Source: Bigelowiella natans CCMP2755
Lineage: Eukaryota; Protista; Cercozoa
NCBI GenBank assembly: GCA_000320545.1
Contig: ADNK01003344.1
Span: forward strand, 1 to 37,983
DNA length: 37,983 nucleotides
Reading direction: 5' to 3'
A program made the position numbers and the translations under genes. Position 1 is the stretch's first letter. Each line of letters begins with the position of its first letter. This document shows positions 5,029 through 37,983 of the stretch, piece after piece. The notes beneath the pieces are model-generated. The model searched no databases. It worked only from the letters and a program-made list of their open reading frames with translations, and had not been told where the DNA came from.

Positions 5029-5808
5029 ATGCGTGCATTAATACATAAATTCTCTGTAATATTACATCGTTACATCGTTATGTCATCATTATTTATCATC
5101 ATGATCATCGTCATCACCATCGTCGATCGTTGTTATCATAATCCTCCTCCTGTGATGCTTGTGATGAACAATCTATGATTAAATCGATGATTTCAACTTG
5201 AAACAACAACTGAGGATGATGATATATGAAAACGACGAATCCACGATGAATATGAAGATGAAGATGTTAATGATACATACGATGGTGTTTGCTATGACGA
5301 TATATTGACGTGTGAAAACAGCGATGATGTAGTTGGCCTTAATTACAAAACAATCAGGGATTGAAACCTCGTGACTTTCTTCGCGCAGCATTGGACATGG
5401 GAAGATCGAGTCGTGTTACTTACTTACTATGCGTGCTCATGATGATGACGAAATGACGATGACGACGATGATCATGATGATGATGATGATGATGATGATG
5501 ATAGTATATGTCCGCTCCTTTAGTCACGCATTTAATACTAATGGAAACGCTTATACGTGAAGCAGTCTTGACATGTAGCTAAATGAGATTCTCTTCTTTG
5601 TTAAGGCACATTTTTCACGGCCTTTCGATTCTTCCAAGCACGCAATCAGGTAGTAGTAGTAGTAGTAGTAGTAGCAGAGGTGGTGTCGGTCGGTAGTAGC
5701 GGCTCCTACGATGTACAATAAACTGTTATCATTGGACTTTTCTGCTCTGCTTAGCACCCAACACCATCGACGCATGATGACCACAGACAGCTCCCCACCC
5801 CCCCCCCA

Positions 5809-36895: not shown

Positions 36896-37268
36896 ACACG
36901 ATATAGCAATATTTAATCCTCTACAGCTATAAGATCTGGACATCTATGCTAGATATGTTCACTTGGGAGTTTAAGATGTATTTTGTCCTCCTGCGTTAAA
37001 TATCCACTTCCTTCCGGGCGTATGCAAGTGCATACGAAATAATGCTCAAATACGGCAAATTTAGTCGTTAGAGTGCGCGCATAGAAGTTGGAAATGCAGT
37101 CTGGCGCACATGCATACGCGCAAAGCCGGAAATAAGTGGTAAAAGCTACATCTTGTTACTGTCAGCGGTCTGGCCGCGCCACCCACGATCAAGGAGCTGT
37201 CGCAGCATGCGCACGTCCACTCGTGCTGCACGCTGCGCTGCGCACATGCGCATGGAAGTTCTCAGAAC

Positions 37269-37426
37269 TTCGGGAATCTTCGAGAAGCTTCGAGAATCTT
37301 CCAGAAGCTTCGAGAACATTCCGGAAGATTCGAGAATCTTCCAGAATCTTCGAGAGCATTCCGGAAGCTTCGAGAATCTTCCAGAGAATTCGAGAGAATT
37401 CTGGAAGATTCGAGAATCTTCGCGAA
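37269..37426. promoter_or_regulatory. Array of heat-shock-element pentamers (alternating nTTCn/nGAAn) in the LTR
   Basis: 15 consecutive 10-mers CNNGA(A/G)NNTT (37271-37420) plus a final GAA give 16 TTC and 16 GAA positions at exact 5-bp spacing; 3 of the GAA positions read GAG. Confidence 0.7.
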
Positions 37427-37575
37427 TGCGCCGGAACCCAATGCGCACATGCATGCAGCGCAAGTCACAAGTCATCAACACAATTCAAACGCACACAGGA
37501 CCGCGTGTTGACACTCAGTGACATCAGCACAGTCCCGCGCACAAAAGCTAAGCAGCTACCGCAAGCCCTCTAAAA

Positions 37576-37586
37576 GGTTATGAGCC
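37576..37586 (+). other. Primer-binding site complementary to the anticodon arm of initiator tRNA-Met (half-tRNA priming)
   Basis: GGTTATGAGCC is the reverse complement of GGCTCATAACC in tRNAi-Met; same PBS type as yeast Ty5 and Drosophila copia. Confidence 0.85.
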
Positions 37587-37745
37587 TCAAGAGGACTTGC
37601 AAAAGAACCAAGCAAACCCCCCACCCCCCCCCTTCAGCTACATCCTTCCAGAAGAAGGAACTGAAAGCGACAACAGCATTCCCTCAGCCAATCTTCGGTC
37701 AAGCCTCCAAAGCACTGAAAACAAAGAAAACAGGAACGAAACAAC

Positions 37746-37983
37746 ATGTCAGAAAAGCAGATAGACTCCCTGCTGAAAAACTTCACCCTCAAGTACGATG
37801 GTAGCAACTACAAGCCCTACATGTACAAGCTAATGTCTGCCTTTGAAGCAGCGGATTTGGAATCATGCTTCAATGTCAACATAGAAATAGAAGGAAAGGT
37901 GACAGAAGTCAATGTACGCACCGACCCCGCTCACCGACGAGAGTACTCAAGCTATCCCCGGAGCAATTCGATATCTCAATCCC
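37746..37983 (+). CDS. gag: Copia-type Gag N-terminus (runs off the window)
   Basis: MSEKQIDSLLKNFTLKYDGSNYKPYMYKLMSAFEAADLESCF... is open to the window end; K.dG.NY....M...L resembles the copia Gag N-terminal motif. Confidence 0.65.
   Translation, partial: MSEKQIDSLLKNFTLKYDGSNYKPYMYKLMSAFEAADLESCFNVNIEIEGKVTEVNVRTDPAHRREYSSYPRSNSISQS

Follow-up and report, generated by a model that had tools for sequence, protein, structure and literature searches.

The locus and its retrotransposon

The window, by which is meant the entire stretch of 37,983 nucleotides that was analyzed, is the whole of one contig of Bigelowiella natans CCMP2755 (ADNK01003344.1), and its final 830 bases hold the 5' portion of an LTR retrotransposon that breaks off at the contig edge (Table 1). 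LTR limits were set by comparison with approximately 40 other copies and by the target-site duplications on copies L031-L037. A preliminary reading made from the letters of this DNA alone (the sequence-only reading) had placed a copia LTR at 37154-37575; the class and the right-hand end stood, and the start was moved six bases inward to 37160 by the target-site duplications. In every copy the LTR begins with TG and ends with ...CTAAAA, rather than with the TG...CA termini that are usual, if not universal, in Ty1/copia elements. The U3 stretch upstream of the array of heat-shock elements (HSEs) is kept in all subfamilies, the old copy L025 being the exception. Set against intact copies, the gag gene of the window copy is missing one A and one C, at 37942 and 37976, two 1-nt deletions that put it out of frame from codon 66 onward. 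They fall within the final 45 bases of the contig and may be contig-end or assembly errors.

Table 1. Coordinates of features in the window, in other copies of the element and in host tRNA genes. Positions without a prefix refer to the window.
Feature	Position	Strand	Remarks
5' LTR, Ty1/copia retrotransposon	37160..37575 (416 bp)	+	Termini TG...AA; 5-bp target-site duplications
U3 part before array	37160..37268	+	TGCGCA-type motifs; assigned by reading of the sequence
HSE array	37269..37426	.	32 nTTCn/nGAAn pentamers (29 perfect); within U3
Predicted core promoter and R	37427..37498	+	Delimited by array end and poly(A) site
Putative U5	37499..37575	+	Start placed from poly(A) site (single contig); end from LTR boundary
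Primer-binding site	37576..37589	+	14 nt; complementary to host tRNA-Met(CAT) positions 26-39
gag-pol start	37746..37983	+	Ended by contig edge; out of frame from codon 66
Antisense introns (at least 14)	L031:1366-5662 (copy on G000:C460)	-	GT..AG, 56-253 nt; from contig joints along gag-pol
Internal HSE row	L031:6210-6247 (element 5672-5709); C392:2916-2953; C142:7489-7526		In 1-kb UTR, ~390 bp before 3' LTR
Host tRNA-Met(CAT) genes	L185:107-178; L186:113-184		ARAGORN

The 3' LTR on contig C392 was considered as the other end of the window copy and rejected, the flanking 5-mers being unlike (GTTAC and ATCGG). The flank just upstream of the insertion contains a 21-nt motif (GCGCACATGCAT.C.GCGCAA, 37103-37123) that is found again at LTR positions 283-304, aligning locally at a score of 30 where shuffles reached 26 at most; a site for a shared factor and a remnant of an older LTR are possible explanations. 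The remainder of the window (1-37100) has an extreme abundance of short microsatellites with di- and trinucleotide units, filling 244 Tandem Repeats Finder rows.

Element family and coding capacity

A genome search returned 68 matches to the family. Full copies were cut out for two subfamilies, A (n = 7; L031-L037) and B (n = 5; L054-L057 and L059), and copy comparisons were made on these and other individual genomic copies; the full element and its further copies, the recovery of which had been proposed in the sequence-only reading, are thus in hand as 12 full copies. These are 6.2-7.1 kb long. Their LTR pairs, of 416 or 358 bp, differ by 0-3 mismatches (at least 99% identical) bar one diverged pair, and perfect 5-bp target-site duplications flank 9 of the 12. 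A gag-pol open frame of ~1480 codons (1470-1490) is intact in most full copies, and Pfam analysis of a 1480-aa ORF located Retrotran_gag_2 at residues 105-223, Pol_BBD at 374-457, rve at 608-703 and RVT_2 at 958-1208. Integrase accordingly precedes a copia-type reverse transcriptase, the order of Ty1/copia elements, which bears out the copia assignment in full-length copies. The window LTR is 99.5-100% identical to the LTRs of at least 15 other copies, and it belongs to a young, multi-copy Ty1/copia family of B. natans that apparently was active recently.

The primer-binding site is an exact 14-nt complement of the anticodon stem-loop of tRNA-Met(CAT), not of the tRNA 3' end, and this pairing with the anticodon arm of tRNA-iMet suggests that a tRNA fragment serves as primer. 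Internal tRNA-fragment priming has been described for Drosophila copia, a case that the B. natans site resembles. At the polypurine-tract position, a G-rich tract (GGGGGCG) adjoins the 3' LTR in all copies. Two internal motifs resembling polypurine tracts (ATGGGGGCGAATGT) occur ahead of the real tract, in the 3' UTR at approximately positions 5170-5260 of the L031 element.

Structure of the HSE array

At 37269-37426 the LTR contains 32 successive pentamers in which TTC and GAA alternate in strict 5-bp phase; 29 are perfect, and the 3 imperfect units are all GAA>GAG. The array was found as the sequence-only reading had described it and is absent from shuffled sequence: a 4-unit pattern (TTCNNGAANNTTCNNGAA) has 10 matches in the window, all inside the array, as against 0 in 100 dinucleotide-preserving shuffles. 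Genome-wide, a 6-unit pattern gave 383 matches as against 0 for the reversed control, and among the matches listed 100 of 100 belong to this copia family. An HSE consists of at least three contiguous inverted nGAAn units in 5-bp phase, and by unit count the array offers 30 overlapping or ~10 non-overlapping sites for HSF trimers. Three extra GAA/TTC units precede it at 37254-37268, out of phase at 1- and 3-nt spacings. The array also has a higher-order repeat structure of 20 and 40 bp.

Core conservation, array length and a second row

The sequence-only reading had remarked that the spacers vary while TTC and GAA stay fixed, and had proposed comparing the two across copies. Both the remark and the proposed comparison came out in favor of the cores. 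Within the array, deviations were counted at 3 of 96 core positions (six positions in each of 16 decamers) and at 26 of 64 positions in the four spacer columns (Fisher p = 1.4e-9); between subfamily representatives, polymorphic columns made up 5 of 96 in the cores, 17 of 62 in the spacers (p = 1.2e-4) and 95 of 400 elsewhere, both p-values being optimistic, since neither the units of a repeat nor related copies are independent samples and a tandem array can be aligned in more than one way.

Array length differs by lineage (32, 28, 22, 20 and ~36 units), shifting in steps of 10 or 20 bp, with phase and cores preserved throughout. Slippage or template switching could produce such steps. In copy L037 (G000:C2046) the unit count is 28 for the 5' LTR but 32 for the 3' LTR, which indicates that array length changed after, or during, one round of reverse transcription. 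The array thus grows and shrinks stepwise, and site dose would be an evolvable trait of the element. Subfamily B has only ~20 units, yet it matches subfamily A in youth and equals or exceeds it in number, so a longer array confers no obvious advantage.

Subfamily A carries a second HSE row, (TTCCAGAATG)n, of 6-8 perfect units with nearby dimers, the spacers of which are unlike those of the LTR array. At the same site subfamily B has only 3 units, and its 3' region is different. Four lines of evidence, namely core conservation within the array, core conservation between subfamilies, a fluid unit number with phase and cores preserved, and the second row, indicate that the array is under selection as an HSE.

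The host HSF pathway

Verification that the genome encodes an HSF had also been called for. Genes for HSF DNA-binding domains were found, with PF00447 matches of 97.7 and 54.8 bits; one HSF ORF, of 289 aa, has exact counterparts in a JGI gene model of B. natans (Bigna1 49541) and in the transcriptome, and exact protein matches establish B. natans as the organism. The DNA-binding domain aligns to the solved structures of human HSF4, HSF2 and HSF1 (E = 2e-21), and its recognition helix, SFVRNLNMYGFR, is nearly unchanged. HSP90 and small-HSP genes were located in the genome, as were two cytosolic HSP70 genes, the 600-bp upstream regions of which hold 6.7-8.3 HSE-like triplets per kb, as against 0.19 per kb in the window background. 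From the HSF genes and these HSE-dense HSP70 promoters we conclude that a canonical HSF-HSE system very probably operates in B. natans. Capture of the array from an HSP70 promoter was considered and rejected: when the LTR was aligned locally to the sequences upstream of both cytosolic HSP70 genes, the only similarity found was periodic and HSE-like, with no wider homology.

Transcripts in public sequencing runs

The element is present in 20 public runs from 8 studies, the kind of run being RNA by guess. Contigs of four runs from four studies, the culture conditions of which are coded, were mapped on L031:339-6338. Contig k-mer depth was 10^3-10^5 on the element as against 6-378 on the 200-bp flank in the four runs, contig depth being a poor measure of expression and the contigs carrying no strand, level or end information. 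One contig of run X3 has a tail of 23 A residues after L031:877, which is LTR position 339 (window ~37498), marking a poly(A) site on the sense strand. Given this site, and with the array ending at LTR position 267, sense transcription is predicted to start within positions 268-339, so that the array would lie immediately upstream of the start.

All 15 of the best-supported contig joints skip 56-253 bases, and in 14 of the 15 the skipped sequence has CT..AC ends, i.e., GT..AG on the minus strand. Spliced joints have a depth similar to that of unspliced sequence. On the minus strand 12 of the 14 upstream exons end in AG, 11 introns start with GTA, and all end with a pyrimidine-rich tract and YAG. 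Depths, poly(A) tail and spliced joints together argue that the runs are RNA and that the element is abundantly transcribed, much of the RNA being antisense and spliced. Runs of coded condition document abundant RNA at most, not induction; should the cultures have been free of stress, the element would not depend strictly on heat for its expression.

The 5' splice-site motif AGGTA was counted in the gag-pol frame. From shuffles preserving both protein sequence and codon usage, it is expected 8.4±2.4 times on the antisense strand and 4.5±1.9 times on the sense strand, and the observed counts are 18 and 0. Antisense AGGTA ranks 4th in enrichment among the 1024 pentamers, with two overlapping pieces of CAG|GTAA in the top 12, and 10 of the 14 introns use antisense AGGTA sites. 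Subfamily B has the same 18/0 asymmetry, and the excess was not found in host intronless genes. We read the depletion on the sense strand as avoidance of splicing in an intron-rich host. An antisense coding gene was considered and rejected: taken singly, several exons have stops in all three minus-strand frames, so the antisense RNA appears to be non-coding. A six-frame family search of the whole intron-rich draft genome did not find a Piwi (Argonaute) domain, which hints, though weakly, at a possible lack of canonical RNAi in B. natans.

Recurrence of HSE arrays in metagenomes

Arrays of at least 8 units were found on at least 118 metagenome contigs (L060-L177), with 8-33 units and a GC content of 0.22 to 0.71. 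Among the 109 ORFs beside arrays that were listed, the commonest Pfam families are RVT_2 (4), Pol_BBD (3), integrase (3) and copia gag (2), and on several contigs (L084, L127 and L174) the array lies 0.3-1.1 kb downstream of a copia-type pol gene. B. natans is therefore not alone in having copia genes with long HSE rows beside them. Some long HSE arrays lie on high-GC contigs that are apparently bacterial.

Proposed function and alternatives

On balance, the array probably acts as a multi-site enhancer for the host HSF, which would make this an HSF-responsive, ONSEN-like LTR. Up to ~10 neighboring HSF trimers would cooperate in binding immediately before the transcription start, and their binding would couple synthesis of genomic RNA, and hence retrotransposition, to the heat and proteotoxic stress pathway, as it does in ONSEN.

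U3 tandem repeats are common in LTR elements, and the array could be an ordinary one that merely resembles HSEs, unrelated to HSF or heat and serving another factor, DNA structure or nucleosome exclusion. The 20- and 40-bp higher-order structure and the change of length by unit steps would fit such a repeat, as would the finding of equally patterned long arrays on high-GC contigs of apparently bacterial origin. We hold it to be improbable nonetheless: the cores are far more conserved than the spacers, and the only core changes in the array are GAA>GAG; the second row keeps cores and phase with different spacers; the HSP70 promoters of the host carry the same units; and inverted nGAAn units at 5-bp phase define, to our knowledge, the binding site of HSF alone among known factor families. 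A rival of greater weight, though still an unlikely one, grants that HSF binds and takes the array for a strong constitutive promoter or enhancer, at which basal HSF activity is enough and heat adds little. An element depth 10^2-10^4 times that of flanking single-copy DNA, in four runs from four studies, is what it would predict, and the many near-identical copies in both subfamilies fit continuous activity. However, the culture conditions of those runs are coded, contig depths measure expression poorly, part of the signal is antisense, and the HSE-bearing LTRs that have been validated are silent without heat (PMC12801592).

It is also conceivable, though improbable, that the HSE rows (the array of the 3' LTR and the internal row) mainly drive antisense RNA, which would then serve to regulate copy number or else be rendered harmless by splicing, in the manner of the DIRS-1 transcript E1 (PMC3950715). 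The CT..AC joints with their consensus splice sites and a depth like that of unspliced sequence favor this, as do the AGGTA counts on the two strands and the position of the internal row, to the right of all introns seen. On the other hand, contigs without strand or end information do not place an antisense start, subfamily B has the 18/0 asymmetry with an internal row of only 3 units, and the sense poly(A) end means that sense RNA exists too.

A broader proposal joins the two strands, and we put it forward as a speculation with a small chance of being right: the element would be built for HSF-controlled transcription of both strands, and the 5' splice sites of the antisense introns would have been written by selection into synonymous positions of gag-pol. 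The HSE rows in both LTRs and in the 3' UTR, being orientation-independent, would drive the sense genomic RNA and a long antisense RNA. Antisense splicing could then be an evolved device that dismantles or exports antisense RNA which would otherwise pair with the genomic RNA; alternatively, it could yield an RNA for copy-number control. We know of no such antisense-splicing device in LTR elements, and a literature search found no paper on selected antisense introns in retrotransposons.

Significance

If heat or proteotoxic stress does activate this family, Rhizaria would become the third eukaryotic supergroup with HSEs in LTRs, after those of plants and animals. The family would also be the most extreme case known, with ~10 adjacent trimer sites in a number that varies between and within elements, and it would provide a natural dose series relating HSE number to promoter threshold and strength. 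The LTR would further be a candidate for a strong, possibly inducible promoter in B. natans, a marine model alga for secondary endosymbiosis. Should the antisense-intron signal prove real, it would add a new layer to the biology of retrotransposons. To judge from the metagenome scan, microbial eukaryotes seem widely to carry long rows of HSEs near copia genes, a trait so far unreported, and its recurrence bears on how warming seas might mobilise the transposons of phytoplankton.

Comparison with known systems

A literature search turned up no description of LTR elements in B. natans, of HSEs in them or of heat experiments on them. The best matches of gag-pol are protist or environmental contigs, Logan contigs included, at 33-45% identity, and plant copia elements reach at most ~35% over a third of the query. 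The six nearest gag-pol relatives found (33-45%) show no array reaching 5 units on the short contigs available, where LTR pairs are likewise not seen. By these matches the B. natans element appears to lie outside the ONSEN lineage, the two not being close relatives.

ONSEN (ATCOPIA78), of Arabidopsis and other Brassicaceae, is nevertheless the nearest likeness in kind, a Ty1/copia element with young copies and with clustered nGAAn/nTTCn units in U3. It has five clustered HSE-like units in 49 bp (PMC13602373), whereas the B. natans LTR has 32 in 158 bp, about six times more, and a second, internal row; heat induction is proven and HSF-dependent in ONSEN and is predicted from sequence in B. natans. 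LTR elements of Macrostomum lignano, of the Ty3/Mdg4 and copia types, carry one to four HSEs, mutation of which abolishes the heat response (PMC12801592). Their canonical HSEs were gained independently in LTR promoters, which supports recurrent convergent evolution of HSEs in LTRs; they differ from the B. natans element in having one to four motifs per LTR rather than a single giant length-variable array, in belonging mostly to another superfamily and in having an animal host.

The sequence-only reading knew of no such element described in the protist lineage concerned; as a claim of novelty this is overstated, protists offering two precedents. In Dictyostelium discoideum, heat shock and other stress induce the antisense transcript E1 of DIRS-1 (PMC3950715), like ours a protist retroelement that makes antisense RNA, and one with heat-responsive terminal repeats; DIRS-1 is, however, a tyrosine-recombinase element with inverted repeats, and neither a giant phased array nor a multiply spliced antisense RNA is reported in PMC3950715. 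The SmTCL copia elements of Symbiodinium microadriaticum are induced by heat at the level of transcription and have expanded recently (PMC5776459). They too are Ty1/copia elements of a marine alga, but neither HSE nor promoter occurs as a term in PMC5776459, whereas in B. natans the cis-element is evident and induction is what the DNA predicts. A Helitron family of Caenorhabditis spreads HSF-binding sites through the genome (PMC6927752), the emphasis there being on the rewiring of host genes; it is a DNA transposon, unlike the LTR retrotransposon of B. natans, the solo LTRs and 3' LTRs of which could by analogy rewire host genes likewise. Set beside these systems, the proposed mechanism is of a known kind, and what is new is the scale of the array and its tandem, length-variable form.
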